Shown: piece after piece, positions 8,101 through 60,906 of the stretch
Numbering within the stretch: the first letter of the stretch is position 1
Layout of the letters: the number at the start of each line of letters is the position of its first letter
Assembly: GCA_039096225.1 (NCBI GenBank)
Contig: JBBPEB010000003.1
Coordinates: 62,001 to 126,000 of the forward strand
From: Blastocystis sp. Blastoise
Lineage: Eukaryota > Protista > Bigyra: Opalinata
Length of the DNA stretch: 64,000 bases
Direction of reading: 5' to 3'
Made by a program: the position numbers and the translations under genes
Notes under the pieces: model-generated
The model's database searches: none
What the model was told of the DNA's origin: nothing
The model's input: only the letters and a program-made list of their open reading frames with translations

Positions 8101-8255
8101 TTCTTACTAATAAGTGAGAGAATGCTGTGTATTTTTATTTTTCTCATTATTCGTTTTTAATTCATTTTTTATAAACTACTTTTATTACTGAAATATGAAT
8201 AAAAAAATAATGTTGTTAATTCTAACACTATAAACAATTTTTGTTTTTTTGACCC

Positions 8256-8757
8256 TATTTCCCGTAAGAGAAACAACAAAATGACTGGAGTTTTTTAGTC
8301 AAAAAAGTGTTGGCCTAAACCCGAGAGCAAAAGCTCCGCCAACTTGTCGAGTTTCTCTCTTTTTGACAAGAATAACTTAAAAATAACTCTAAAAAATATA
8401 TTGTTTATTTATATAATCATAGACATTCTAAATATTGACTATTTTACAGTGTTTTATGATTTAAAATGACTGTTTAAAACCAAAAAGACTTTAATTTTTT
8501 CTCTGAAGTCTATAATTCAGGAATGGATTACATGAGTGAGAAGTTTTTAAAATTTGTGTATTCTCTGAGTGATATATTATCATTTCAATTATTCTCGTCA
8601 AGTCCTTTTACAATAAAAACCATTATACAGCCTAAACCAAAACACACCTAAAAATTTCTTCTTTTTTATTTCCCAAGGAAAAAACAATAAAATGACTTGA
8701 CTTTTTTATTCATAATTTTTTAGCCTAAAGACGACAACATTTCTTTCAGCCAACTAC
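8256..8757 (+). repeat. Degenerate ~90-bp direct repeat (about 8256-8345 and 8667-8757) in the left subterminal region
   Basis: tatttcccgtaagagaaacaacaaaatgactggagttttttagtc..gcctaaa..gccaact versus tatttcccaaggaaaaaacaataaaaatgacttgacttttttattc..gcctaaa..gccaact. Confidence 0.65.
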
Positions 8758-9350
8758 CCTAGAAAGTCAAAACAATTAAAAATTCAAAAAAGAAAAGTAA
8801 AACGGAAGCTCTTGTTTTTGTTTATTGATTATCGTCAATAAACCTGTTTTTAAAAATATGACTTTAGAATATCATTCAGGACGTGATTTATAGTTCAGGG
8901 TATCGTTTTAAGGTTTAAAATAGCTTTTTTGAGAGAATTCATAATTATGTCCTAAACCAAGAGGAGTTGTGCGTTTTTATCATCTCTGTTGTTAGACATA
9001 CTTATACACAACATACTCAGCTTACAAAATTGTTTTTCTTGCTTGTTGTGATTTTCACTCATTTTTGAATATTTGATTTTTAGTCTCAAAAGTGGTATAA
9101 AGTGTCTATACATGCCTGTAAGAATCGATTTTAATACTATAAAGTCAAAAATATTAAAGAAAAGTGACAGTGAAAAAAAGGAGGGAAAAAATATTTTTTT
9201 GAGTTTCTAGATATTCCCGCAAAAATGATTTTTCTTTTAAGACCTGAATACACCCATACGCTATTGAGCCTATTGACTTAGAAAATATTTCATTTGTTAC
9301 ATATTTTTTTTATTTTTATTCTATTTTTATTTGCCTTTATTTTTAAAAAT

Positions 9351-13550
<4,200 letters not shown>

Positions 13551-13619
13551 CCTTAAGCTTATATTGGTAAGTATCTATCAGTTGATGATAGAAAACAGGT
13601 TCAATTCCTGTCTTAAGGT
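13551..13619 (+). ncRNA. tRNA-like (mascRNA-architecture) element 1
   Basis: CCTTAAG-CTTA-TATTGG-TAAG-TATCTATCA-GTTGA-TGATAGAAA-ACAGG-TTCAATT-CCTGT-CTTAAGG-T. 7-bp acceptor, 4-bp D arm, 9-bp stem (1 mismatch), 5-bp T arm with canonical T loop/B box GGTTCAATTCC. Confidence 0.85.
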
Positions 13620-16069
13620 CAATTACATAACTAATTCTTTATATATAGGTATCAATAATTATATAATATTAATTTTTTCAAAAATTATCTATTCAAAGAG
13701 ATGAAGATAAATTAGATCAATTACTATTTTTTCTTTACATACGTATTTATTTCATTATTGAATGCATTGATAATATATAGATCAATCAAAAATAGCATTC
13801 AAAATAATCTTTTTAACAAAAAGAGACACAATAACAGTCAATTACTTCTTAAGTGTATTATAAAACAAAATAATCTTCTCAAAAGATTATTCAAGTCGTT
13901 TTATAATGAGTATATGTGAAAAATTAGTTTAGTTCAAAATAATAATTCTCATTTTCAAAATTTGATTATCAAATTATTCTGCGTAATTTTTTTCTCGTAT
14001 AATCACTATACCCTTTTACACTAGAAAATAATCATTTAAATTCATTTTTAACTTGATAAATAATAAATTAAGAATTTATTCTTGTTAGAAAACAAAATTC
14101 TTAGAAAATAATGCTAGGATCATACAAATAATCAATACAAATATTCAATCATACACCTTTAATGTGATTTAAGACAAGTCATAAAAATGGAGATTGTCAA
14201 TATTTTATATTTTTTAACTAATTGATATCTTAATAACTTTTAAACTTCATTTAAACACTAAATATGTAATATAATATGTTTTTGTCATTTTCGAAATTAG
14301 AATATGTATTTCAAATAATTTTAGTTTTACTAAAAATCACTTAAAATGAATACACAGAGTTTGTAGACAATAAATAAATTATGAATAAAACTATATATCG
14401 ATATAAGACTTTTTTTGACAAAAAAGTGATTTTTGCATTTGTTTTATAATAAACTATCAACACGACTCCGACTATTCAACTAAAAATATATAAAATATGA
14501 TTTTTGTTTGTTTATACGTATATTTGATAATAGTAAGTCCTTGAATACTAGAAAAAGTTCTTGCTGAGTAATTATAAAATACTATTTTGATTTGTTTTTG
14601 ATATTATTTAAATGAAAAACACTATTTGCATGAAAAAACGCTTACCTTATGTATATCAAGTCTATTTAAAGATATTAGAAGACTTTAACTTGATTTCAAT
14701 TATTGCTTTAATTCACTTTAAAAATATTTTTTCCACTCTCTTTGTCATATTGTGATAATAAATTAATAAAAAATCTGGACAAATACATTAAAAAATAATA
14801 ATTTATAACATTTTTGACTCTAGACCTTTTTTATCTTCATTTTCTTTATTTTATCATTTTATTGAAGATATATGATTCAAAAGAATTCTTTAAATAATGA
14901 TTCAGGCAATCATTCTGGATTATATAAATGACTTTTATTCTGGAAATAGAAGTTTCAGAGTCTTCTCTATAAGTCTGTATTGTAACCTATATTTATTTTT
15001 TAAAAGACTTATACTTACTGAGTGATACTAAAAATAATTTTGACAATTAAGGATAAAAATCACTCTTCCATAGTCAAAACTGATTATAAAATGATATAAT
15101 GATAAATAACTATATAATTCTTTAAAATAAAACAATTTTTGTATTACTTATGATAATTAGGATAAATTGAAAATAACAATAACAATATCCATTTTCCTCA
15201 TAGAAATAAAATTTCTCTTTCTCTTTTATTCTTAACCATTCATTTTATTTATGATGAAGATTCTCTATATTTAGTAGATATGAAATTATTCATGTTTATT
15301 TTCATTATTTCAGCTATATCTTTTAAATTCCTATTACACCCTTTTATAACAAAACAAAATCCTACATGACTTATTACATATTTATTTTATTATATCTTAT
15401 ATGATTAATATGATATATTATTAAATTATTACTTTATTTTATTATATATGATACTATTATGATGGTAGGTGTTTGCTGTTTCTTTATATTTTATTTTTTC
15501 TACTCTATTCATTCATTTTCTATAGTAGCTGTCTCTGCTTGGTGTTTTGACACTTGCTGGTCTCCTTAAACGTTCTGGTCCTTCTTTTGTGTGGTCGTGG
15601 CTCTCTTATAGATGGGTTCTTTAGGTCTAGAATGGAAGGAATCAATGTTAAAAGAAGGTATATATCATCTATATTATCTATTACATATTATATAACTAAC
15701 CCCACTTTATATTTATATAGCAGTAATGTATATATTTATATTTTATTATTCTATATTAATTTACTTTATTATATATTATTATATTATATAACTTACTCTA
15801 TCTTTATATAGGTTTCCGGGGGTCACTATGAGGCAGGATTTTTTTGCAAAATCTCTCCAAAATGAAGATTTGTATATCAGACTGAATCAGAACCCTTTCA
15901 GCTTAATTATAAACATGGGGAAAAACCTTAATATATTTGATAAATTCACGGGAATATAAAAAATGTCTTTAAAAATGACCCAATGAAAATTATATATTAT
16001 TTTATATCAGCCAATAAAACATATTTAAAATAAACAAAACGATTGGATAACTTTTCAAGCATTAATATA

Positions 16070-16560
16070 CAGAAGAAAGAACAAAGAAAAGAGAAAAAAA
16101 GACAAGGAAAAAAAAGAAGAAGAGAAGAACAATTTAAGTTTGTAATGGAGTAATCTATACAGCTATTAACACTCTAATAAGACCGCAGAAAGTTTCAATA
16201 CCTATATATAAAGAAATGATAAGAATGTAAAGAATAAAAGGTGAATATAAGTAAATACCATTGATAAGAAGCTTTGTAATGGGTCAAGGTTGAGATACTT
16301 GGTCTTCTTATAGATGCTAGAATATAATTAGTAAAAATGAATAGAAACATACCTTTCCAATTACTATTGTTTTTGATATTTTGAGTTGATAATAATATAA
16401 TAAACCTATAGAATTAATTATAGAATAAATATATATATACCTTATCCATAATCGTATTCATTTACTTATTATATTGATGATATAAAGAAACCTATATACT
16501 ATTATATGTATAAAATAATAAAAATACATTTTATAGAACCTTTATTATATATTTTTGAAA
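16070..16560 (-). ncRNA. Putative five-exon short non-coding transcript in the inner element
   Basis: Four short GTAT...TAG introns on the minus strand (about 16492-16527, 16406-16440, 16317-16352, 16202-16258). The ATG at 16461 reaches a stop after 20 codons. Pyrimidine-rich tail. Confidence 0.4.
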
Positions 16561-16655
16561 TATAAATAGAAAAAATATTTATGTAAAGATTGAAAATTAT
16601 TAAAAAAAATAAACAGGGGTGGGGGTAAAAGAGAATCTTTTTATTTATATATAAA

Positions 16656-16706
16656 CTAGGGTCACGCCGCAGGTCCAGTGCCTAACGGCCCCGGACCGCG
16701 GCTGCA
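16656..16706 (-). other. Isolated GC-rich hairpin followed by CTAG|T, resembling a Helitron 3' terminus
   Basis: Minus strand GCCGC-GGTCC-GG-G-GCC-GTTA-GGC-A-CT-GGACC-T-GCGGC, then GTGACC-CTAG-T. It stands out sharply from the AT-rich background. Confidence 0.55.
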
Positions 16707-16840
16707 TAAAGAGTATATAAAAAATATTTATTATCTTTTATCTTATATATTATATATATATAGTTTTTAATATGAGTCATTTATTATATATTATATATTA
16801 TATATTATATATATTATTTATTATTTATTAAATATTAATT

Positions 16841-16909
16841 TCTTATACTCTATATGGAGAGTTACAATTATTTTATGATTGTAATCAGGTTCAATTCCTG
16901 ATATAAGAT
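16841..16909 (+). ncRNA. tRNA-like (mascRNA-architecture) element 2
   Basis: TCTTATA-CTCT-ATATGG-AGAG-TTACAATTA-TTTTA-TGATTGTAA-TCAGG-TTCAATT-CCTGA-TATAAGA-T. Same arm and loop lengths as element 1, fully paired (one G-U). Confidence 0.88.
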
Positions 16910-16949
16910 TATTTTAGACTTTTTAAATAAGAAATTAAAAAAGAGAAAA

Positions 16950-18730
16950 AATTATTGTTTAATTAAAATCACTTTCTAAGTCAATTTTTTCACAACAATT
17001 TATTTTTAAAATATATTTTGTATTTAGTAATAATTAAACAACTGTTTAAAACATTCTTTGAGTTTTTAAAGTCAATAACTTTAGAAATGAGTACCAATGT
17101 GAAGTAGTGTAAAGTATTTTTAATTCATAAAATTCATTTAAATAAGCATAATATAATAATTTTAACTCATTTTAATACTTTTTAAAAGAATTAGAAAGCT
17201 TTAATCATAACAAAGTCAGCATTCATTCTAACTTTGACAACTAAAACATTATTTAAAAAGTTAATATTTTTATATTCGTCTCAAATAATGATTTTAACAT
17301 AAATAACTCAAAATAGTAACTTTTAAATAGACTTTACCCATTCAAGATCCACTGTATCAAAACAGTTTCCGTCAGTCTTTTGATATAATATAGAGTTTAT
17401 CATACTATTTATTAAATAAAAGTAAATGTTTTGAATCTCTTTCTTAAAGACCCTTTTTGACACATTATGAAAAGTTGACACACTTAAACTCATTTTTAAA
17501 TGCTAATATTTACACACTTTACTTAATATGACCATAGCTACACATTGGTGATCACTTTAAAACATTTTGTAAACCTTTTGCATTTGCTCATTTACTTCGA
17601 CCAAAATATTTTCATCCCTCCTTTTGACATAATATAGAGTGTGTTGTCTAATTATATGAAAGCGATGGGGAATTTTGAATCTCGTCCTCTAAGTCAATCA
17701 TTTTCACATTTTTTAAAATTAAGACCCTTAGAGTTGATTTTTGAAGTTAATTTTTCTACAGTGTTCCAAAAACACGATTTTGGATAAACTGAAGTAAAAA
17801 TATTTTTTCAATAACTCTCACAACCCTTCACACATCCAGTCTCTAAAAATAGTTTTTGCTATATTTTTGATATGTTGTAGAGTGTCTCTTAGTGTATACT
17901 GAACAATATCTCGTTTCTTAAAACTCTCATTTTATGACTCTCTTTGAACATATTTTTACTAATTGAAAGGCTTAAACATATTTTTAAAAGCTAATATTTA
18001 CATAGTAGACTTTATATGACTCTATAAGCACATTAGTCAACACTTTAGACTTTTTAAGGACACTTTACCATTTGGTCATACACTTTGATCAAAACATTTT
18101 CGTCCCTTCTTTTAACATAATATAGCTCATACACTCTAGTTTAATGAATAAACACTCTTATTTTGAATCTCGTCCTCTAAGTCACTCATTTTTACATTTT
18201 TTTAAATTTAAGACCCTTAGAGTTGATTTTTTGACTCAATTTTTCTACAGTGCACGAAATTCACGATTTTAAATAAACTGAAGTAAAAATAAATTTTTAA
18301 TAACTCTCACAACACCTCACACATCCACTCTCTAAAAATTATTTTCTTTGCACTTTTGATATGTTGTAGAGCTACTACAGCTGTACACTAATTAAAATCT
18401 ATAAATTTTTTATTCATAGTTTAAGACTATGTTTTACACATTTATTTAAATTTGGCAACCTTAAACTATTTATTTAAAGTTCTTATTCATAGAATATACT
18501 TAATACATGATTCTATACACATATGCAAACACTTTTACTTTTTAAGACACATTTTGTCATTTGGTGATACACTTTGACCATCATAATTTTGACTCTCCTT
18601 TTAACATAGAATAGAGTATTATCTCTAGTTTACTAAACAAAAGTCATTATATTGAATCTTATCCTCTAAGACCACTTAATTCACATTTTTTCAAAATTGT
18701 GACACTCAAACTCATTATTTTAAGACCTTG
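16950..18730. repeat. Degenerate ~244-bp satellite with ~488-bp dimeric higher-order period
   Basis: GAATCT-anchored monomers at 17433, 17677, (17921), 18165, (18410) and 18654. 17677-17882 and 18165-18371 are clearly the closest pair. More eroded copies lie to the left. Confidence 0.8.
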
Positions 18731-20179
18731 TTTTAACTATAGTAGTTTGAGGACCTATTGATTACCATTATACAATATTAGTCCATTATAAGAAGATCGA
18801 AGAAAAATATCGATCACTCAAAAATCGTCCTCAGGAACTCAAAATTGGTACACCTAGGTTTTTCGACCTCCTGAATCAGAATATCATGTCAAAATAAGAA
18901 TCTAAATTTGACCGTTAAGGCCTCACGTGTTCAATATGAAAAAGTATTAAAAAATAGATAAATATAAAGAATAAACACGGATAACGTATATTGTGGGATT
19001 GAGAAAAAATCAAGTTTACCCCATGTTTATTTTCCAATTGTCTGGTCAACAATTTTTATCGGGGTCACCCCAAAGAGCCAATCAAAAACGACTCAAAAAT
19101 CATGTTTTCTGTTCTTTTATTAATATCTTTTTAATTATTAATTATATCGCTTAACCAAATATATGGTGCACAACTACATGTTATATCCTATTGAACTGTG
19201 TTTCACTCAAAAGTTAACTCCCCGTAAGTTTAGAGGAGTTGCGGCGACAAACTATAGTATATAGTAGCCAATCAAATGCATTTTCCAAAAACTGACCAAT
19301 GGGAATTTTTTTGCCTATTCTCATATATATAGTAATGAAATTTCATTAAAATTTGATTTAAATCCAGGAGATAGATGAAAACGTCTGTTTTTCTTTTTTT
19401 TAATACTAAAAAGTCTTTGTTAAACAAAAGTCTATTAATAGAGTTTAAAATGAGTTGTATACGTTTATTTATTCTTATTAATAACGTGTAGAGACTACTG
19501 AAATAACAATTTTAATATTTTCAAGGAATGAAGTCATAATTGCCCTCATGTATAGGTTCTATTGATATAATAATATGACATAATTGATAAGAACAGAGTA
19601 AATTATAAAATAAGAGAATTTATATGTCTTTATGTTTGTCTAATTAGTACATTCTTTAAAAAATAATTATTTTTATTTTTCTATGATTATTATAATAGAA
19701 ACATGTTTCTATGAATAATTTAAACAAAATAATAAATACAATTTAAATTGTTATACGAGAAATATATCAAAAATAATAGATAATAATAAAACACTGTATC
19801 TTTATAAGAAAAGTAAATAATAACATAAAATTATCATGCAGTTTAATATAAATCAGTTTTGAATCATAAATATATGATTTAAATGAATAATAATATTATA
19901 ACAATAGGAGAATAAATATTTATTCATCGAATACATAATATATATGTGGTAATAGAAGGAGGAAGAAGAGTAGTTATTATATAGTGTATTATTTCTCTAT
20001 ATGCTTTACTTTTTATATATTAAAAGAAATAGAAAGAGTAGAATAGAATGAAGATAATAAATGATATACATAATAGTATATTGAAGATTCTTTTGAAATA
20101 GATAATATAATATTAAAAATAAATTCAATTCAATAAGCTTATATAATTGTATATATATATATGTATATATATATATACC

Positions 20180-20604
20180 CATAAAGTAGTTCTTCTCCCA
20201 TCGATAATCGTTGTTTCAATACAAATGTAAGTGTAGAATATTTAATATAATGTTTATATCTATCTTGTAATCGTTCTAAACCATAGACAATACAATATTT
20301 CTTTTCTTCTTTAGATAATATACTATATCCTTATGATACTATATATTTATTTCTATAAAGCCATTAATAAGATATGCTTTTGCATAAAAACAATTCCAAT
20401 ATAATTTATTATCAAAACTCGCAATTCGAACACAGCATTCCGTTAACTTTTGCCAAAAACGATTCCATTTTAAATAATAAAGGCCAAATATATGATTTAC
20501 TAAACACATAGGATAACATTCAGGTAAGGATTTCGTTAATAACATTTGAACCGCTTTCTCTATATATGCATTTCTTATACGTTCTTCTGTTAAAGATACC
20601 TATA

Positions 20605-20644
<40 letters not shown>

Positions 20645-23319
20645 TATTTGTAAAATAGAGTATATATATATTATATATTATATTCATTATACTATAATAT
20701 ATATATACAGGAACATTTTCAAGGTTAGTAATTACATTAAATAGATCTACAGGACTGACAAACGGATAAGATGAATTATCTTCTATATCAGGTACTAAGT
20801 AAATAAGTTGTGCCGTTTCATCATCTGGACTTTTCTTTAGTTTCTCCATAAATTCATTTTTCGCCTTAATAGTCATGGTATATATAAGTTCATGGTCATC
20901 CGTTTTATATTGGAAATGATGATGTACTGATCGAATGACGCTCTGTATGTCGATACGAAGAATGTTCGAAGAGAGTAACGTTTTGTACTATAGAGAAATA
21001 TTATAATATATGCATTAATATTATGTTTTTTAATGATATATAGAGAGTAATAGAAAAAAAACAACAATAATATACTATTATTATTATTTATATACATAAT
21101 TTGTCTTTACTCGCTAATCCAATTCTATCTAAGAATACTTGTAAAGTCTTTGTATATAGGGCGGGGATGAAGGGAGAGCGAGTAACGAAGTGGAACAACA
21201 GGAGAATCTGTGAAGGGGAGGAAAATAAAGAAAAAAAAAATATATATATATATATATATAAATGGAAGAATAAGAGAGAATGATATCATAATCCAAACTA
21301 ATTTATATATACATATATATATACCATAAACAGTGTCTTCTACAAGATATAAAGAGGGATAAATAGAGTGATCATCGAAGAATGTTGTAAGACAAAGAGA
21401 AATGTCCCGCGGGGAATTGAGAGATAGGAAAGTAGTGATAGCCACAGAGAGTAGTTCATTAAGGGATTCCGTGGGAGGAAGAAGGAGGGAAGATAATGGA
21501 ATATCTACATACTATATATATATATATATAGTTATAAATAAAGAATATATATATAGTTATAAATAGAATAATAATAGAGAAAATTATATATATATACTTG
21601 ATATCTAAGGAATTCAGGGCTATCATATAAATCATGTATATTATCTTTATTAAATTGTTCTTGTAATAGATATACATTCTTATATTTGGTTCCCGCGTCG
21701 ATAGTTGCCGCCAAGGAAGTCACGAGAGGTTCATTGTTATTAATCATAATGAATGTAGCTTCAGGATAATGAGAAGAGAGAGAAAGAGGAAGAGAAGTAT
21801 TGACGGATGTCCAGTGTAAGAAGGAGAAATGAGCTAGAAAAGAAAGGAATATATAACTAGAATATATATAGGAATATATAGCTAGAATAAATATAGGAAT
21901 ATAGAGCTAGAATAAATATAGGAATATAGAGCTAGAAATATATATAATAATAAGCATAATAATATTAAGAATAGCAATAATAAGTATAATTATAATAGAG
22001 TATAAAAAAGAAAATAAGAGAATGTCACAGTATGCGTCACATACGACGATCTACTTCAATATTTTGCTTTAAAATTCGAAGAACAGTTTTGTCAGATGTA
22101 GGACGTGCTTTGAACGATAAATAATTAAGAATGGCACTATATATAAAAGTATATATAGGTATATGTAGTGAGAAAAAAATAGATATATATGGTTATATAA
22201 AAAAAATACATATATATATACTTCATAGTAGCTTCTCCATTGATTCTATCCACAAATAGATTACGACTATGAACATTCTTAACCCCGCGGGAAATCATCA
22301 AATCAAAGGGTAATTGTAAATAGCTATATAGTTATATATATAGTTATATATATAATTATATATAGTTATATATATACAGATTAATAAGAGTATGTATATA
22401 TGTAGAATTGAGACCCAATCGGAGTAGAGAATAAAGAGCAATACCATCACTCACCTATATATATAGTTATATATAGTTATAAATATAGTTATATATAGTT
22501 ATATATAGTTATATACTATTCTTAATAATATCGTTAAAGAGTTGAGTGTAATCTTTGGTATTCTTATACCTATAATATAATAGTATATAATAATAAATAA
22601 TAATAAGATATAATAAATAATAGTAAAATATAACATATAATATACTAATCAAGATTGTCTAGAAGAAGTCGGCCTTGACTTTCTTTGCTCATCAGATCCT
22701 CGCGGGGATCTGTGTATAATTTATGCATAGTATCAATAAGTGTATAGATAGGGGGTAATTGTATATATGTATATAAAGGCAGAGAAAAGAAGCATATAAG
22801 TCTTCAGATAGAGTCCATCTGAATTTAGATTGTTCAATTATACTTAATATCAGTCCATTCTTAGTATTTGAATATGTATATAAGAATTAATCTTTATTCC
22901 ATTTTAAATATAGTTTATTTAATGTATTTCTAATTATATAAGAACTACATATATATACATTATGTATATCGGACATATTCTGTAGAGTTGATTGAGCATA
23001 TATATTGTTGAAAAGTGGCTTAATATTGATGAATTGAATCAAAGGAAGACTTCCCGCCAATTTCACAGTCAATAAACCAGTATTTCTATATACATATATA
23101 TTTATATATAGATCATATATAATAAGAAGATTAGCAGAAAATACACAGAATATATATTATTCATGTAGTAAATATACTATTATATATACTATTATATATA
23201 TATACTGTCCACAGATAGATACTGTTAATATTCATTTGGCGGGATACGAGGTAATAAATAAGAAAATAAATTTGATACATGACTATATTTCTGTGAATAC
23301 ATAACAATTAATAAATCAG

Positions 23320-23352
<33 letters not shown>

Positions 23353-24620
23353 TTCATATACAGTTAATTGTATAGGAATTATAACGTGCCTTAACGTTCT
23401 TTGAGGGATGGAGGAGTGCGTCAGTGAGGGAGTTACAAGAAGTAACTATAAGAATGTATATATATATATATATAATGATTATTATGAAGATATATATATA
23501 CAGGCAGATCTTTCAATAGGTTGAAGACGACTATATATATGTATAATTATTATTATTATTATTATTATATAAAATTATATAAAATAATATATATGCATCA
23601 AGTTGTTGAAAGCTCTTTAGAATACGAAGTGCATGAAGACGATGTGTATGTAAAGGGGAGGCGAGAAGTGGTGCGAGGGTAGGGATAAGGGCCTGAAGGC
23701 GAGAGGATGAAAGGTAGGGACTATCAGAAGATAATGATGTATATATATATCTATATATATATATATATAATAGTATTAATATATAGATAATATGGATAAA
23801 GTATAATAATCTAATATATATATATACCTGCAAAAGTAGCTAAAATGATAGGATTATATTTATATATAGGTATCAATTCAGATAATATTGAAATTAACTA
23901 TATAATAATAAATAATAATAATATATATATATATATATACTTATTCTTGTTGTTGTAAGGAATCCATAATAGTATCTCTTTCAAAAACATTTATATATAT
24001 ATAATGAATAATTTTTGACCAATAAACGTCATTCTCCATACATAAACCTATATATATATATATATATAATAAGTATATATAATAATAATAAATATAATAA
24101 TAAGTATATATATACACTCTTGTTTATCTTTTAATTGATTTCATAACTGAATGTCTTCTTTAATATATTGTTCACTTATAGTTTGAAAATATATAAATAT
24201 AATATATGATAACAGCTGGATAGTAATTATAAGAATGAACTATATATATATATTATTTTCATAATCAAAATATAATCGTAACTATAATAAATATAATAAT
24301 AATAAATATAATAATAGATAAAATTGTAATATTATTTATATATACTTTGTATTTCAAAATAGTTTGAATAGCATTCCAATATATCACTTTCATAACTGTA
24401 GTATACTAATGATACTAACTACTTTCTATATAGGTACATAAAAAATACTTAAAGATCTTGCATAATAATCTACTATATCCATAGTAAATACTAATGATTC
24501 TTCTCGATATATTTCTAATAATTATTTTATACTTAAAAAGAAAGAACGATATATCTAAGGAGAAGGGATGTAGTAGAGGGAAACAAGTGAAAGATATGTA
24601 GATATATCCATTTTATTATT
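20180..24620 (-). pseudogene. UTP20: Captured, disrupted UTP20-like (SSU processome HEAT protein) fragments inside the inner element
   Basis: NLENVP|VSLTEERIRNAYIEK...NHIFGLYYLKWNRFWQKL...LYWNCFY and LLASPLHTHRLHALRILKSF resemble conserved UTP20 segments (from memory). Introns are retained. Frameshifts/stops occur near 20200-20340, 22760-22890 and 24450-24620. The region is far shorter than a full UTP20. Confidence 0.6.
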
Positions 24621-24705
24621 TCTATATAAATATATATAAATAATAAATGATAATAAGTTTAATAATAATATAACTAATATAATATAAATAATAAATATAT
24701 ATACT

Positions 24706-25310
24706 TATCTAGATTTTTGTATTTAAAATGACCTACAAACATAAATCTAAATTTTAAAATGTTCCACATTCAATTACGGTATATGTATCGTATATCTATA
24801 TATATATATATATAATTTATTATCATAAAAATATTAGTAAATATTATTTAAAAAGAGACAGATCAGAATATAACAAATTAGTTTAATAAATAAATATAAA
24901 AATAAATTAATAAAATAATAATAATAAAAAAAATAATTATAATATAATTAATAAAAATACTCACATAAACTGACATAGAACACACAGCAAACACTTCGGG
25001 AAGCCATCAATCATTCTATACTATAAAATAAAGATATATTAAATAAATAATGCTAATTAAAAAATATAATTATATACAGAAAGTGTTTTTGATCCAGTTG
25101 AGCCACCTAGGAAAATACAGAACCAAATTTTACGATGGAAAGAGTTGTCCTATCTTTAAAAGACCTGATACCTAAAATAAGAAATGAATTAAGTAAAATA
25201 AAATATTAAAAATACAATAAATTTGAAAAAAGGACACTGTAACTAAATAAGAAATAATGTAATTAAATCAAATATATAATCATACGTCAAGTTGAGCAAA
25301 AAAAGTAATC
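24706..25310 (-). other. Non-coding spliced leader exons running inward from the inner element's right end into the UTP20 cargo
   Basis: A series of small exons with GTATGA/GTATTT/GTATAT/GTGAGT donors and TTAG/ATAG acceptors. The 24706-24795 exon has stops in all three frames. Confidence 0.4.
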
Positions 25311-26420
25311 AAAAGACCAACTTTCAAATTTTTCTTTTTTTTTGAAATGAAAAAAATTACCGTGTATTACAAAATTTGACTGTCTGAATTTTTGTTTTTG
25401 ACTTTTTTTATAAACATCATAAAACAAGTTTTTTCATTTATATTATGAGTCTACATGCTCTATTGAACACCGTTTAGCAATTTTTTATTGAAAATAAGTC
25501 AACATTTCCAAACCACTAATGTTAAGAAAACAAACATAAAAAGCAGCTCTGTTTGTCAAATAAAGACCCTATTGACTAAATATAAACTTAAAAACCTCAT
25601 ATTAACTCTATATGAGAAGAATAAAGAAAAATAGAAAAATAATATCGACTTAGAATTATTTTTTTTTGTTTTTCAGAAAAATTCCTTCTCTAAACCACTT
25701 TTTTAGAAGGTCAAATTTTTAAAGAAAAATTATTGGACTATTTTAAAAATTAACCAACCAAAACTCTTAAATAGGCCACCCTGCCTCATAGTGGGTTCCG
25801 TTGCTGTCGTTGTTGTTAATTGGAGAGAATGGCTTATCAAAGGTATGTATATATATTAATTATATTCCTTTTTATTACTTATACTATTTAATATATCTTT
25901 TATAGGATGGTTCCTTGTCTTCGCTTCCTTTCTTTTCTTGTAATTGTCGTGATAAAAGGTATATATTTTTATTTTATTATTATTTTAAAATGTTATATAT
26001 ATTACTAATAGTACTAGTTAATTAATATCATCTCTTTATATAGGTTGGCTTGGTTTGGGTTTCCAATTAAAGACTGAAACTGTCCTGCTGCTTAAATATT
26101 ATTAAATATTATATATACTAAATTATATTGTTAATTATATGTTTTATTATCTTTTTTTAAATATTTATTATATTGTTTTTTATATATTTATTATTCTTGT
26201 TTTTATTATATGTTTTTAATTATAATTTGATGTTATTTAATTTGCTTGTTTTGTTGTATCGTTGATTATTACACCACAAAAATAATATAAAGACCAATAA
26301 ATATAGAATAAAGGATGAAAATAAGCATTTCTATTGGCCAATTATCTATTTTAAGGTGTGTCATACTTATTCACTGCTCTGTTGATAAAAAAACCCACTG
26401 AAACTCTGACCAAAAATGAC

Positions 26421-26663
26421 ACTGCTCCACCACTGGGGAAACCAAACTGAACTTTTCAATCATCTTTTTACTAAAGTCTACCCAAAAAAATTTACTGCTC
26501 CACCACTGGGGAAACCAAACAGAAATTTACAATTATCTTTTTACTAAACCTTGCTTAAAAATTCCAACTGCTCCACCACTGGGGAAACCACACTGAAATT
26601 TACAAACACCTTTTTACTAAAGTCAACCCAAAAAACTTCACTGCTCCACCACTGGGGAAACCA
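26421..26663 (+). repeat. Four subterminal repeats with an invariant 24-nt core ACTGCTCCACCACTGGGGAAACCA at exact 73-bp spacing
   Basis: Cores at 26421, 26494, 26567 and 26640. The intervening 49-mers are related but diverged. The array ends about 50 bp inside the outer right end. Confidence 0.95.
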
Positions 26664-27135
26664 GTTTGTTATAACCAAAAACCTTTTCACAGACCCCAAA
26701 AAATGCTTATAGTGTAAATAGTATATTATAATGTATTTCTTTAGTTATTATAGTTTTAAAAGAATGATAATAAATTTTTTAAGTTTATTATTATATATGA
26801 CTAAAACAAAACGACGAATGATAAAGAAAGCAATCTTTGTGATATATATATATATATATAATTGATTGTGTTAAGCTTCAAATATGTTCATATAAAGAAA
26901 TAAATATAGATTGTAAATATATATAAGAAAAATATATATATTTATAATATATAAAGAAATGAAATTAAATTTATATAATATAACAAAAAGAAATGGTGAG
27001 CAATATATATAAAGAATAAAACAAATATATATATAAAGAATAAAAAGTAGAAAAAAATATATGTATCGAAAGAATAAAATATAGAAATCATAATAAAGAT
27101 GTAAAAATCATAATAATAAACAATATATATATTGT

Positions 27136-28391
27136 TTATCCTAATAGACAGAAAGAGAACATAATAAATACATATCCAACAATCATCGAGAAAACCATCC
27201 AATTAGTATCAACATCTAGTTTGAATCCCGTTGGAATTAGTTCGGAAGTCGTTATATACACCATAATTCCCGCGACTATACCAAATATACATCCTAAAAC
27301 AACGTTATTGAGATAGTTTTGAAGAAATAGTGCACAGAGAAGAGCGCCTATAGGTTCTGCGAGTCCTGATAATAAAGACCATAAGAATGCTTTTCCTTTG
27401 GATCCTGTTGCATAATAAACAGGAAGAGCAATAGAAAGACCTTCGGGGATATTATGAGCACCTATACCTATAGCTAAACCTATACCTACAGTAGGATTAT
27501 CTATATATCCAACATAACTTATCATTCCTTCAGGTAAGTTATGAATAGCTATTGCTAAACATGTTAATAATCCCATATTATTCAAATTTTCTTTTAATTC
27601 TTGATCCATATAATAAGTAGCATGAGCTAAATCCGAAGTATTCCCCGTAAATCGAGTAATTTCATAACTTTCTTCAGGTACAGATACATCAATTAATGTA
27701 TCTTTCTTAATCACTTCTTTATTCTCATTATCTTCTAATACAGGATTCATTAAAATAGTACCTGTTTCTGGTGTTTTTAACCCACTCTCACTTACACGAA
27801 CAGATATATGCTTTTTTATCTTTGCTATTTATAGAATTAATTATAAAAGCTAATGGATAATAAATAAAATAAATATAATAAATAGAATAAATATAATAAA
27901 ATGAAAAATATAATAAATATAATAAAATGAAAATTTACATTAAATATACAAAAAATTAAATACATACGATTATGATGAATATCTTTAGCCATTTTTTCGG
28001 TATTATTCTCTGATATTTCAAAATCAACTTTTGTTCCTTTATGTAAGAGTTTTTCAAGAATAAAAGTTATAAGCATTCCAGACATGAAGGCACCTATTGC
28101 ACATAATATTCCTAATTGTTTACTTTCTGTAGCCTTGATAAAATACTGCTGACATTCATTATATAATTCTGAAAACGATATAAACAACATAACACCTGAA
28201 GCAAAACCTAGGGATGCTGCTAAGAAATTATGATTCGCAAGCTTCACCAATGATTTGAAATAAACTATTGCACCACCCACTGCAGTTGCAAGACCAGCAA
28301 CAAGAGAAAGACCTATGCCAATCCACGTCTATAATATATTATAAATCTAAAAATCTTATAGTTCATTACGTACATCACTATTCCACACCAT
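27136..28391 (-). CDS. zupT: ZIP-family zinc/metal transporter, ZupT/GufA type
   Basis: MVWNSD|TWIGIGLSLVAGLATAVGG, LGFASGVMLFISF, AIAIHNLPEG, GIGAHNIPEG, SGLAEPIGA and GIMVYITTSELIP. Three exons. Confidence 0.95.
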
Positions 28392-29096
28392 TGAATATTA
28401 TTTATTATTGTATTTTATAGGTTATTTAAATATTTAATAAAAGAATTATTTTTGTCTTAAAATAAATTCAGTTCATTTTCCTCTTGATAATTAGGAATCA
28501 GTTGGTTCCATTTGTTTTTATTGTATATGATTGATTTAGGATTTTGTTAGGAATAAAAGTGATAAACTCAATAAAGAAAAACTCTTTAAGATAAAGGAGA
28601 ATGTACTGAAGATAATATGAAGCAAAAGAAACAACTTTTTAGATTTTACAAAAAAAAAATTCAAAAAGAGTTGATATCGTGAATCAAAGAAGAAAATGAA
28701 AATGTATAGAAGAAGAAGGAAAAAAGTTCGTTTAATGAATAAACAGGTTTTTGCAAAAAGAAAATAAACAATTATAAAAAGAAAAAAGAATAATAAAGAA
28801 ACTACAAGAAAAAAAAGTATTTGAAGAATTAAGAAAAAAAATGTATTGGTAATACATAAAAAAAAAGAGCAAATATATAAATAATAAATATATTTGTGAG
28901 TAAAGAATTGAAAAAAAAATACACAAAAATATAAACAAATAGCTATACTACGAATAATAATGTTTAGAAAGAAATAATGTCAACAGGGAAAAAGAGACAG
29001 GTACTTATAATACAAAAAGAGTGGATATATATATATAATATAATATATATAATATACATATATGAAAAAATAAAATATACAAAAAAAAAAACAAAT

Positions 29097-53994: not shown

Positions 53995-56900
53995 TGTTAG
54001 AATCTTTATTTGAATTGGGCCATGAACTTGAGAATCATTTGATTTTCCTGAAGAATATCTTATCTATTAAAATTGGATTTCTTAATGAAAATGTATATAT
54101 TAATATATTATAATATAATATATATATATAATATATATATAATATAATATATAAAATATATATAATATATATATAATATATATATATAGCATTCTATTCC
54201 CTGTCGTAATGAAGATATTCAATATATATTTGAGAGTAGTGTCTCTAATATTTCTGATACTCTTATTCGTAATAGAAATGGTATGAAGGAATCTATACAG
54301 AATATTCAGAAGAATAAGAATGAAAAGACAAATCGTATATATAATATAATATAATATAATATAATATAATAGTATATAATAATAATATAATATTATAATA
54401 TACTCTAGTTTTTACTTATGATTATACATTGAGTATAACTACAACTCAAAAAGCTTTTTCTTTTCCTTCTTCTTCTTCTGCCAAGAATTCTTGTGTTATT
54501 CCTCAAACAACATCTACTCATACCTCTTATTATGTATGTAGTCAATTCGGATCTCTTATCGCTTCTCCCATCGATTTTGATCATTCTACCGATAAAAGAC
54601 GACGATTACCGTGGGGAGCGGTTGCTGGGTGCTTAGAAACAGACAAAGAACATGTTTCAAATAAAGGTATATATATATATATATATAATGATTAATAATA
54701 TTCATTATGTATAGTATCATTATACTTTTTTATTATATATATATTTTTATCTATATTATTATTATAATATAATAATAATCTTCATAATATAATACTAATC
54801 TAAATACTAATCTAAATAATAATAATATAATATGAACTATATAATAACAATCATAATATACTATGAATCTATATAATAATCCTAATACTATATAATCCAT
54901 AGGATATGCTTATTGTTTCCTTCCATTGCCTATAACAACAGAGTCTCCTATTCATGTGAATGGCTATTTCGATCTAAGTGATAATCGAAGAGAAATGTGG
55001 TATGATGAAGAAACAGAGCTTCGTAATGATCCTCGGTGTATCTGGAATATTTATTTATTAAGAGGGGTTGTAGCACCTTGCTATATACGATTTATGAAGT
55101 ATTTAGCTAATTTAAGAATATCGTCTTCTTCTTCTAAAGAACAGAAAGAATTGTTTAATCATTATTTACCTTTAGAAGAAACACGAAGAATATGGAGAGT
55201 ATTTATGGATACATTTAAAGAATTATGTATTAATGAAACTTTCTTCTTTGATTATAATACCAAGAAACTCTTCAATTTATTTAATTATCCGTATTTATTT
55301 ATACGTGATGATATACAACAAGTCTCTGAACGAAATGCTGAAAAGAACTTAAATGAACTGATTTCTGGATTTGAAAAGTGTGGTATTCAAACAGCTGCTA
55401 TTGATAACGAAACGAAACAGTTCTTAACATCTCTTCTAGCTACCAATCAACATCTTTTAGTTAATAAATTCTTAAATAGTGATGAATTACGTAAATATCT
55501 AATTATTCGCGGGAAAGAGTATATTAATCAATTATCAACTGAAGAAGTTAAAATGATGTTAAGGTATATATATATAGAATAACTATTATTATTATTATTA
55601 TATATATATAGTTATTGTTTGATGGATATTAATAGTAATAACTTATCCGCTTTAAATAATTTATGTTTACTTCCTCTTCAAAATAATACTATAGGATCTT
55701 TTCTCTATATGTATACTGATAATTATTGTATTAAACAACAACTTATTGATAGAGGATATGATGAAGTATATATTATATTTATTATACTTATTATAATGTT
55801 TTTTTATTATATTTATTATATTTATTATATTTATTATATTTATTATATTTATTATATTTATTATATTTATTATATTTATTATATTTATTATAATGTTTTT
55901 TTTATATTTATTATATTTATTATATTTATTATATTTATTATAATGTTTTTTTTATTATATTTATTATATTTATTATATTTATTATATTTATTATATTTAT
56001 TATGTTTATTATAATGTTTTTTTATTATATTTATTATATTTATTATATTTATTATAATGTTTTTTTTATTATATTTATTATATTTATTGTATTTATTATA
56101 TTTATTATATTTATTATGTTTATTATAATGTTTTTTTATTATATTTATTATATTTATTATATTTATTATGTTTATTATAATGTTTTTTTATTATATTTAT
56201 TATTATTATATTTATTATATTTATTATTATTATATTTATTATTATTATAGTTAAAAGTTCGTTTATGTTTATACCGTTACCCTCACGAGATGAATATTAA
56301 TAGAATTATTCAATATTTAAATATGAATACTATTTCTAGTGATAATATTTATATTAAAGGTATATATACATATATTTATTTATTATATACATAATCATTA
56401 TATCTATATATATATAGCATCTCCAGAGATAACTACCTTATTTCCTTCTTCTTCATCAACATTTCTACATGAATCTCTATCTTCGAATTTCTCATCTCAA
56501 ATACTTATTATTATGAACTCAAAATTATTTAATCTTTGTGAAATGAATACTAGTATATTTATCGATTGTATGAAGAAAGAATTACCTTCTGTATATATAT
56601 ATATATTGCTTTTTTTTAAATATATATATAATTATATATCTATACTATATATATATACATAGAATTGGAATTCTAGTTCTATTCAGAATTATTCAGCTTC
56701 TTTTAGCAAGGAATGGTTTGTACAAGCGTTAACATATATGTTTATTGGTAATAATAGTATTAATATACAAATTATTTCTTCTCTTGGACCTCTTCTTCCT
56801 TGTGAAAATAACCATATATGCTCCCTTCTTGATATAAATACAAATAAACCTATAGCTATGGACACACATACTCTTCCTTATTCTATTCATAACTTTATTA

Positions 56901-59900
56901 ATAAGGTATATATATAAACTTTTATTTTATTTATTTATTATTATATTTATTGTTATATTTTATTTATTATAATATATTTATTATAATATATTTATTATAA
57001 TATATTTATTAAAATATATTTATTATAATATATATACTTATATTATTTATTAAACATATTAATTATATATATAGTTGGGTATAAATGTATTGGATAATTC
57101 TCTATCGGATTCTTTAAAGCAATCTTTATCGTCTTTTTATTTACCTTCTTCTTATACTTCCTTCCTATATTTATTAAATACTCTATATAATAATAATACT
57201 AATCAAATTCTGAATATTATTAGCTCATTCTCAGATCAAGAAAAAAATGATTTTTATGAATTTATTATTTCTCTCGATACAAACTTACTTAACAATGTAT
57301 ATATATATTTATATAATTATAGTTTTATTTATTTATATTAGTATTCTTCAATGTTGAGTAATTTCTCTGTATATCCTACATATGGTCATAATTATACTTC
57401 TCTTAATTCTCTCTCTCTTCCTGATACGAATATACCTTATGATTGTCTTAATGGATATACTACAGTTGCTTTCTATAATAAGTATATTATTATTATTTAT
57501 TTATATTTATATTACTCTTTACTTATAATAATACTTATTCTCATTATAATACTATAGTTCTGAAGAATATTCAAAATTAAGATTATTAACCTATAATTAT
57601 TTATCTTTTGCTACTTATATTTCTGATTTATTCTTAAGAGATGTCAGTACTATGGACCCTCATAAGAGAAACACAATCATTAGTATTATCTATAAAAACT
57701 TTAATATTATTCAGTATATATATATTATATTTATTGTGTATTTTTTATTTTAAACCAAATATAATATTATTATTATTTTAACTCTTATACTATTAATAAT
57801 TTTTTTTCTAGAAATGATAATAATACTCTAATGAAATTACAGCAATCTTATTGGCTCCCTAATTCATCTAACCAATTATGTTGTCCAAAAACATTATATA
57901 ATCCTTATATAAAAGATCTTCAAAATATAGTACCAGATTTATATTTACCTTTAAATACATATTATTCTTTAGATGAAAATAGTTTAAATTCTATATATAA
58001 TTCTATTGGTATTAATCGAGTTATTCATAGAGATGGATATATTACTATATGTAGTTATTATATTAGTTTATATGGAAATTCACAAAATAATTCTATTTCA
58101 GAGACTATTAAAGATAAATTAACATCGTTATTACTCTATTTAGATAAAGAGAAAAGTCGATTATTACCTTCAAAACCTTCCTTTAACTATTATTATAGTA
58201 ATGATAATGAAAGTATATATATGGATAGTAATTCCTTCTTAACATCTATTCTTCAATTACCATTTATTATTCCTTTATCTACTTCTCCAATCTCTATTTT
58301 ACCGTGGAAATCCGTTACTATGAATCAAATGGTATGCTTAAATCAATGTGTAGATAGAGAAACTATGTGGTTTGCCTCTTTTGATCGATATATATGTAAT
58401 AATGAACATGTATATATTATATTTATGTAGTATTATTTAAGTTTTATTTTATTATTATTAATTATTATTATTAATTATTATATTAATTATTTATTATATT
58501 ATTATATTAATTATTATATTAATTATTTATTATATTATTATATTAATTATTATATTAGTTATTTATTATTATATTAGTTATTATAAATATTTATTACCAT
58601 TTATTATGTTATATTATTTATTATCTAGTTATCTAATGATTTCTTTGATTATTTACAAATATCAAAACAATTTTCAAATGATCATTTAGTGACTCAATTA
58701 CTTTATATATCTAATTTATATTGTCAATCTTCATCAATATCTATTGATATACAAACTAAATTAACTACTGTTTGCTTTAAAATATATCAACAAATATTTA
58801 ATGGAAGTCCACTGTCAGCAACTTCTGAAAATTACTTAAAAACTGAAAAATTAATTTTTATGAATAATATATTTATATCTATATCTCAATTATATTTACA
58901 ACCTTTAGAAGCTAATTATCCTAATATATATACTCTTTCTTCTTCTCTTTCTTGTTTCTATAATGCTTTCAAAACTCTTGGAGCTAAAGAAAAAATGGGA
59001 AAACAAGATTATATTTATGTATATAGAATTATTATTATTATTTTTATTTACGCATTTTTTATTTGCTTTTTTTTAATACATATTATATTTTTATTTCTAT
59101 TATTATATAATTAAAAGTATATATTTGTATTTATTATATTCTATCATTCTATAGATATTGAATTATTTACATACTGTTAATAAAACATCTCCTCTTCCTT
59201 CTGCTTCCTTAGATATAGCTATTACTATATGTCAAAAACTAACTGTATTTGATCTCACTAAAGAAGATTTTAATAAATTATTCCTACCTGCTCAAGATGG
59301 AGTATATATATTATTTTATTTTATTTATTTATTTTTATATTATATTATTATTTTTATAAATCATTATAAATCAATATAAATCTATCTATACAGACCCTTC
59401 AAAGTGTGTCTTCTCTCTCTTATATGGACAGTGACTGGGCCTCTAAAACACGTAATAAAACTCCTCCTTCTTCTCTTATACATAAGAATATCTCTTTAGA
59501 AGTATCAAAACATTTACATGTATTTAGTGTTCGTACAAAGAATTTAACGAAATCGAATTTAAAGTTTAAATCTCAAGGATTTGGTCAACATGAACCTCTA
59601 ACTCGACGTATTAAAGATATCTTAGATCAATATCCTGCTGGACCTACTATATTATATGAAATGATACAGAATGCAGATGATGCACATGCAGAACGTATAG
59701 AATTCTGTTTAGATTTAAATGATTATGGTACAGATTCTTTATTATCTCCTGAATTAGCTCTATGGCAGGGACCAGCATTATTAGTATATAATAGTGGTGT
59801 ATTCTCGGATCAAGATTTAAATGCTTTACAAGAAATAAGTTGTGGTCATAAAAAAGAGATAGTAGGAACAACAGGTCGATTTGGATTAGGTATTAATAGT

Positions 59901-60257
59901 GTATATCATATTACAGATGTGCCATTCCTGGTTACTCGTGATCGATTTATTATATTAGATCCTCATCAGAAATACGCACCTGTTGAAGGAGAACCGGGTC
60001 TTATGATTAAATTCCATGAACAAAGCTTAACTGAAGATTTTTCAGACCAAATCAGTCCATTCCAGTTCTTTGGATGTGATATACGACAAAATTTTAATGG
60101 AACACTATTCCGTTTCCCTCTTCGTAATCGAGAAGCTTTAGCAAGTAGTGATATTAGTAAGAAACCATTTGGTATTGATAATATATTAGAAGCGTTTGAA
60201 GTATTAAAGAGAAATATTAATCATTCATTAATTTTCGTATATATATATTTTTTATTT

Positions 60258-60300
<43 letters not shown>

Positions 60301-60866
60301 TTATTTATTTATTATTTATTTATTTAATAATGATTTATTCGATTTATAAAAAATAATAATTATTATAAATATATTTAATTCTATAAATAATATTATAGTT
60401 AAATCATATTAAACAAATAAATGTATCTATTATACCTCCTTCCTTTACTACTCCTTTGAATCTGTTTACCACGGTTATTCAGGAAAGATCATTAACAGAA
60501 TATAATTGGAAACGTCTTCGTGATATATATTATTCTAAAGATAATAAAGTTTCCAGAACTGAGTTTTTCAATTATTTAAAGCAATATCGTGGTAGAAATA
60601 TACCAAATCATATAGAGATGAAACAATTATTGACTTCTGTTAGTGATTTATTTATATATATACAGAATCATAAAGACGAGATTATTCGTCGAGGAAGATT
60701 ATCTATAGATAGTTCTGATATAATGAATAAAGTAACAAAGATCGTAGAGAAGAATAGTGTTGATTATTTAATATCTACATGTATGGGTGGAGATACTATA
60801 TTAGATATATGTACAGAAGAAAAAAATAATGAACTGAAATTAATTCCCGTTTGTGCTGTTGCTGTA

Positions 60867-60906
<40 letters not shown>

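Follow-up and report, generated by a model that had tools for sequence, protein, structure and literature searches.

The window, by which we mean the whole 64-kb stretch of DNA analysed here, comes from the tortoise gut protist Blastocystis sp. Blastoise (GCA_039096225.1) and has a base composition of about 22% GC. It contains a locus of three nested elements, in which an outer CACTA transposon encloses an inner CACTA transposon and this in turn encloses a Helitron. The outer CACTA (8226-26714) has CACTATAA termini, a 3-bp target duplication (TAA) and subterminal 73-bp repeats at 26412-26663; no transposase, empty site or second copy of it was found in the window or the sampled DNA. The inner CACTA (15824-25793), which is the host of the Helitron, is bounded by a 14-bp terminal inverted repeat and a 3-bp target duplication (GGT). 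Two 68-nt tRNA mimics lie on the plus strand of this locus: copy 1 at 13551-13618, with a discriminator T at 13619, is within the outer CACTA, and copy 2 at 16841-16908, with a discriminator T at 16909, is within the Helitron. Around copy 1 we found no further nested element: the sequence there shows neither a terminal repeat accompanied by a target duplication nor a convincing end of a Helitron.

The 2683-bp insert at 16656-19338 (minus strand) is a non-autonomous Helitron, with a 5' TC, a 3' hairpin followed by CTAG, and no target duplication, inserted before a T (T|T in the window, A|T in the related copy at the sampled locus L144). Its terminator (16656-16702, minus strand) consists of a GC-rich hairpin at 16666-16702, 6 nt before the terminal CTAG at 16656-16659, and is 94% identical to that of the L144 copy. 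This hairpin was also considered as a ribozyme, and was ruled out as such because it is the Helitron terminator. Internally the Helitron has a tandem repeat with a unit of about 489 bp (17258-18719), and its 5' arm carries four CCAAT motifs (19034-19300, plus strand). Related copies of the inner CACTA at L121, L139 and L141 lack the interval corresponding to window positions 16656-19338, show the empty junction, and carry no mimic. Since a 2.7-kb insert with Helitron ends is missing from these three other copies, copy 2 is borne by the Helitron; it lies 185 nt inside the Helitron 3' end, antisense to the element. The related Helitron in L141/L144 sits exactly between the A and the T of a hAT element, other copies of which are empty at this point.

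All helices of the mimic abut directly, forming a four-way junction without linker nucleotides. In the 68-nt numbering the acceptor stem (1-7/62-68) is followed by the D arm (8-21), the middle arm (22-44) and the T arm (45-61). The positions and stems given for both folds in a preliminary description are present exactly as reported, with three qualifications of detail: the 9-bp middle stem exists but has an A-A mismatch in copy 1, the 5-nt middle loop can alternatively be drawn as 7 nt once its A-U closing pair opens, and of the D-loop TGG, described as constant, the GG alone is invariant across the wider family. The cloverleaf is the minimum free energy structure of each 69-nt sequence (-20.5 kcal/mol for copy 1 and -19.1 kcal/mol for copy 2, z about -3.9), and none of 200 shuffles was as stable as either fold. 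Between the two copies both-sided changes occur in 8 of 25 base pairs, with pairing kept in 98% of cells. The 15-nt T arm common to the two copies has two occurrences in the window against 0.02 expected, and a strict pattern of the architecture gives two matches in the window and none in 300 shuffled windows.

A covariance model was built from the two window copies and used to search about 0.32 Mb of distinct sequence of the Blastoise assembly, sampled via transposon proteins. Nine sites were found, representing five distinct sequences that are 63-91% identical; this count describes a sample chosen around transposons and is not genome-wide. Copies 3, 4 and 5, which the model had not seen, scored 66, 84.5 and 57.6 bits respectively. 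Copies 3 and 4 are both carried by a 6.5-kb Helitron at L144 (14201-20689), and are found again in L159, where a transposed copy of this Helitron lies at another locus with 99.9% identity. The host of copy 5 is an autonomous hAT of 5957 bp, in which the mimic lies about 0.7 kb beyond the annotated gene for the transposase and on the strand opposite to it. Short terminal inverted repeats, an 8-bp target duplication and a hAT-type transposase are all present in this element, whose three copies are 99.9% identical and have different 8-bp target duplications. Both this hAT and the Helitron are recently mobile. All nine mimic sites are inside DNA transposons of three superfamilies (CACTA, Helitron and hAT), and no mimic was found in the gene-rich flanks included in the 0.32-Mb sample. 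Because the sample was built around transposons, this restriction of the mimic to transposons is suggestive. Scans of viral collections and GTDB gave no family member, the best locus scoring at most 35 bits compared with 79-91 bits for members. As a separate observation, the L144 Helitron appears to consist of two tandem units, both of which contain the 489-bp repeat and one mimic, surrounding a captured divergent pair of spliced transcripts.

These host assignments alter the earlier proposal that the mimics are associated with CACTA termini and carried one per element. Copy 1 does reside in a CACTA, but copy 2 and its relatives reside in Helitrons and copy 5 in a hAT. The rule of one mimic per CACTA fails at the inner CACTA itself, whose three other copies have an empty site and no mimic, and a rule of one per element of any kind fails since one Helitron holds two and a hAT holds another. 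Most copies of the inner CACTA, and of another hAT family, have spread without a mimic, which is therefore an accessory of these elements and not a requirement.

The compensatory covariation first noted between the two window copies is maintained in the three further distinct copies. In the five-sequence alignment both-sided changes occur in 12 of 25 pairs and 94% of cells are paired, a level beyond that of all 500 shuffles and all slid registers, although the five sequences are related and the shuffle counts are thus not probabilities. The acceptor stem is paired in 35 of 35 cells, with compensatory change at five of its seven pairs; conservation of the fold is lowest in the middle arm (87%), and the D-loop GG and T-loop TTCRA are invariant. 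RNAalifold, unaided, returned the identical fold with a covariation term of -3.6 kcal/mol. The would-be A-box residues T8 and A14 are absent in copies 1 and 5, and because the T-to-A change is compensated in the acceptor stem, selection in these two copies acts on pairing and not on promoter sequence.

Comparison of the orthologous Helitron ends that carry copies 2 and 4 (window versus L144) shows the mimic to be identical at 63 of 68 positions (93%), against 540 of 789 (68%) in the downstream flank (Fisher p = 6e-6). In the same comparison the transposition terminator is identical at 48 of 51 positions (94%) and the spacer at 75%. From this conserved island within a non-autonomous Helitron we infer that the mimic marks something needed by the element in cis. 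In mobile elements belonging to three superfamilies, the mimic is subject to purifying selection. Between families, similarity ends at the edges of the 68 nt, with no clear common flank, body or tail, and when copies from different families are compared, their downstream flanks give alignments no better than those of shuffled sequence. This sharp boundary disfavours a SINE; tRNA-derived SINEs, which are likewise dispersed tRNA-like units with a B box, share a body and a 3' tail, whereas the mimics have neither beyond their 68 nt, keep their fold by compensatory change and travel inside DNA transposons.

ARAGORN, and Rfam at its curated cut-offs, reported nothing in the 64-kb window; when a short stretch was searched with the Rfam tRNA model (RF00005), copy 1 scored 23.5 bits against a cut-off of 29. 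The mimics have in common with canonical nuclear tRNA (RF00005) the acceptor stem, the B-box T loop, the D-loop GG and the discriminator base, but they lack its U8-R9 linker and regular variable loop, have no conserved anticodon and draw no ARAGORN call. The linker-less fold is not the normal nuclear tRNA type of this organism, a possibility raised earlier, as judged from the one host tRNA gene sampled: this tRNA-Gly (in L147) is canonical, with a linker, a 7-nt loop, a variable loop and a T6 terminator, is GC-rich, and scores 25 bits on the mimic model, where mimics score 79-91. The parts retained in the mimics, namely the acceptor stem, T arm and D-loop GG, are those of a tRNA that are read by RNase P, RNase Z and the CCA-adding enzyme, and the anticodon and A-box positions are not kept. 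Where a 7-nt loop can be drawn, its central triplet reads TTG in copy 1, TTT in copy 2 and TTA in copy 4, the middle loop is shorter in copies 3 and 5, and U33 and purine 37 are not kept. Because triplet and loop length vary and these two residues are not kept, decoding by the mimics is unlikely, in agreement with the preliminary description.

The closest structural parallels are mascRNA and menRNA, the tRNA-like ends of vertebrate MALAT1 and NEAT1/MEN-beta, whose crystal structures show a linker-less junction and a GG-to-T-loop elbow (PMC11693755), and whose conservation is strongest in the T arm (PMC11693755, PMC12941219). Like these RNAs (PMC11693755), the mimics have four helices without linkers, a 7-bp acceptor stem and a canonical T arm, and also two G residues abutting the 3' D strand and a long middle stem with a compact loop; in the mimics, too, the T arm is the most strongly conserved part. 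They differ in length (68 nt against 57-58 nt), in the D arm (14 nt against 10-11 nt) and in the middle arm (21-23 nt against 15-17 nt), and they are AT-rich and multi-copy in protist DNA transposons whereas mascRNA and menRNA lie at single-copy lncRNAs. Upstream of mascRNA and menRNA lies a U-rich triple helix that a genomic A-rich tract closes; this structure is absent upstream of the five mimics. The mimics fall below the cut-off of the Rfam mascRNA-menRNA family and of every other Rfam family; an Rfam search by E-value listed only the generic tRNA model, behind which a weaker clan match may be hidden. The mascRNA-like architecture of the preliminary description therefore stands for the linker-less junction and elbow but does not extend to the triple helix or to the Rfam family. 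Because the MALAT1 triple helix is absent, the mimic is an analogue of mascRNA and menRNA and not a member; there is no sign of homology to them beyond the T arm common to tRNAs, and the likeness is best read as convergent. With that restriction our results support the earlier identification of a selected, transposon-borne and non-decoding tRNA-mimic family with linker-less geometry.

Two other systems offer partial comparisons. The gammaherpesvirus TMERs are also parasite-encoded tRNA-like units; they have pre-miRNA hairpins downstream, unlike the mimics, whose downstream flanks are not conserved between copies. As Pol III tRNA-like RNAs of MHV68 (PMC4337559, PMC8223928), the TMERs provide the closest model for transcription of the mimic by Pol III. 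ENEs, the triple-helix stability elements of plant and fungal transposon RNAs, protect polyadenylated transposase mRNAs, and RNase P processing sets MALAT1 and MEN-beta apart from all other such elements (reviewed in PMC7583470). Like the mimic, an ENE is a structured module of a kind known from MALAT1 RNA and found again in transposons, where it controls the fate of transposon RNA. It is the protective half of the MALAT1 end, and the mimic would by analogy be the other half, the cleavage signal.

Upstream of copy 1, and on the same strand, putative GT-AG spliced exons at 9400-9850, read from the sequence, are followed by a 3.8-kb pyrimidine-rich tract (9701-13500, plus strand) that ends just 5' of the mimic. 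A 0.5-kb pyrimidine tract is likewise oriented 5' of copy 3 (L144 16265-16765), so that copies 1 and 3 share an order of putative spliced exons, pyrimidine tract and mimic on one strand; none of the three frames of the exon 5' of copy 3 is free of stops. A similar 5.8-kb tract at positions 1-5800 of L139 and L141 has no mimic. No A-rich tract was found in the 40 nt 5' of the mimic in any of the five copies, the longest A run being 1-3. These pyrimidine tracts are kilobase-long and strand-biased, and gene callers place low-complexity genes on them.

We tentatively suggest, as a reading with slightly less than even chances, that the mimic is a minimal tRNA mimic kept by DNA transposons as a cis-acting RNA-processing cassette. 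A Pol II transcript would cross the element on the mimic strand and the mimic would fold within it, after which RNase P would cut at its 5' edge and RNase Z at its 3' edge, as for mascRNA and menRNA. The upstream piece of RNA would be left unprotected, because no triple helix or A-rich tract precedes the cut site, and the outcome of cleavage would be termination or destruction of the transcript, not its maturation. In the hosts of known polarity, Helitron and hAT, which represent two independent lineages only, the mimic lies on the antisense strand and points into the element from its 3' end. Together, the inward antisense orientation and the unprotected upstream RNA favour an RNase P/Z cleavage or termination cassette acting on element-crossing transcripts, which we again consider almost as probable as not, and which might, speculatively, limit RNA-guided silencing. 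In this more speculative step the antisense mimic could cut antisense or read-through RNA, and loss of that RNA might deny RNA-guided silencing a double-stranded or nascent-RNA scaffold. Escape from silencing would aid any transposon regardless of its transposition chemistry. A partial search of the literature found nothing on RNAi or RNase P in Blastocystis. The fullest form of the proposal, in which the unrelated CACTA, hAT and Helitron elements acquire and retain a common, exchangeable cassette because it recruits host tRNA enzymes to cut transcripts passing through them, as an RNA-encoded anti-silencing device and an independent invention of the mascRNA fold beyond the vertebrates, is possible but rather unlikely.

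Counting against the cleavage cassette, the invariant and perfect B box and the nearby T runs also suit Pol III, and most copies of the inner CACTA and of the other hAT family have spread with no mimic. The mimic could accordingly be a self-contained Pol III gene, its B box recruiting TFIIIC, that yields a non-decoding RNA of about 70 nt trimmed from a short precursor by RNase P and RNase Z, or that acts as a boundary; we regard this as a serious if doubtful alternative. The benefit to the element might then lie in open chromatin, in a tDNA-like barrier to silencing or in a small RNA acting in trans, a proposition of the same limited plausibility. The B box matches the consensus, is invariant in the five copies and equals the T loop of the host tRNA-Gly. 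T5 runs occur downstream of the five copies at +6, +11, +12, +55 and +67, such that a run of at least five T lies within 12 nt in three of five and within 70 nt in all; the background for such a run within 12 nt is 6-16%, giving a post hoc p of about 0.01-0.06. Copies 2 and 4 have just about 200 nt of element upstream, and a partial A box, consisting of T8-R9 and A14 at the spacing of an A box, remains in copies 2-4. However, copies 1 and 5 have lost the A-box positions and none of the five copies has G10 at that register, the distance to the T run differs between the orthologous copies 2 and 4 (12 and 67 nt), and T4 runs are present within copies 2 and 3. A boundary acting purely as DNA would have no need of covariation in the acceptor stem.

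If the mimic instead matured the 3' end of a functional transposon-encoded lncRNA, as in MALAT1 and NEAT1, the exons, the pyrimidine tract and an RNase P cut would form one design. The same-strand layout of copies 1 and 3 and the stop-ridden exon of copy 3 are consistent with this, but no triple helix or A-rich tract would protect the end, the layout is missing in copies 2, 4 and 5, and the long tract of L139/L141 lacks a mimic, making this explanation improbable. Functionless remnants, whether captured tRNA pseudogenes, organellar tRNA insertions or SINE heads, are a very improbable source of the family. Copy 1 does come near the Rfam tRNA cut-off from below (23.5 against 29 bits), the spacing of the D arm suggests descent from a canonical tRNA, and Helitrons and CACTAs capture host DNA; yet the changes are compensatory where decay would be expected of remnants, the mimic is the conserved island of the Helitron ends, similarity between families stops at its edges, and the non-canonical geometry recurs in all copies. 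The probability is just as slight that the mimics are an unusual class of working host tRNAs captured by transposons. For copies 1, 2 and 4 it is possible to draw a stem of 5-6 bp with a loop of 7 nt, but even an orthologous pair of copies does not agree in the middle triplet (TTT and TTA), neither U33 nor purine 37 is kept, the loops of copies 3 and 5 are shorter, and the one sampled host tRNA, canonical and GC-rich, scores far below the mimics on their own model (25 against 79-91 bits).

MALAT1 and NEAT1 have been described as the only lncRNAs known to be matured by tRNA machinery (PMC12941219). We found the linker-less tRNA-mimic design described only for these vertebrate RNAs, and a partial literature search gave no report of tRNA mimics in DNA transposons. 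Selection of a linker-less fold in a stramenopile, without a triple helix, indicates that the fold can arise independently, and the family supplies natural variants for testing the requirements of RNase P and RNase Z. As the three host superfamilies share no transposition chemistry, its presence in all of them points to a general benefit in transcription or chromatin. Such a benefit is directly testable, since the organism is culturable and has a contiguous genome and existing RNA-seq.

Several further features were observed in and near these elements. Spliced models were examined exon by exon, and series of G/T-rich GT-AG microexons were seen inside transposons at L144 17754-18900 (plus strand) and at window positions 15520-15823 and 25794-26100 (plus strand), the window series being split by the inner CACTA. 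Most of the L144 microexons are 48-72 nt long, a multiple of three, and resemble one another at their ends; the series is annotated as a gene of 143 aa. No sequence similar to the series was found elsewhere in the sampled DNA, and the idea that the microexon transcripts are spliced antisense copies of another gene was rejected as no match to such a gene was found there. The inner CACTA carries a multi-exon cargo gene (window 19900-24400, minus strand; P0007-P0011) whose protein has no Pfam match and, within the searched length range, has relatives in the Blastoise genome only. At least four CACTA copies contain this gene, and a hAT has captured part of it. A hAT family of about 16 kb, with at least 15 near-identical copies (L140, L142-L151 and L155-L159), is a recent burst in this gut protist; it carries a gene with a UTP20_N domain, a fragment of the CACTA cargo gene and, at L144 20820-21610, a microsatellite of GC-rich hexamers. 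In the public model P0006 (window 20340-28393, minus strand) a ZIP zinc transporter and the CACTA cargo gene are fused into one gene; the fusion crosses two element borders and is probably an annotation artefact. A sacsin-domain gene, unrelated to the mimics, lies on the plus strand at window positions 54900-63650.
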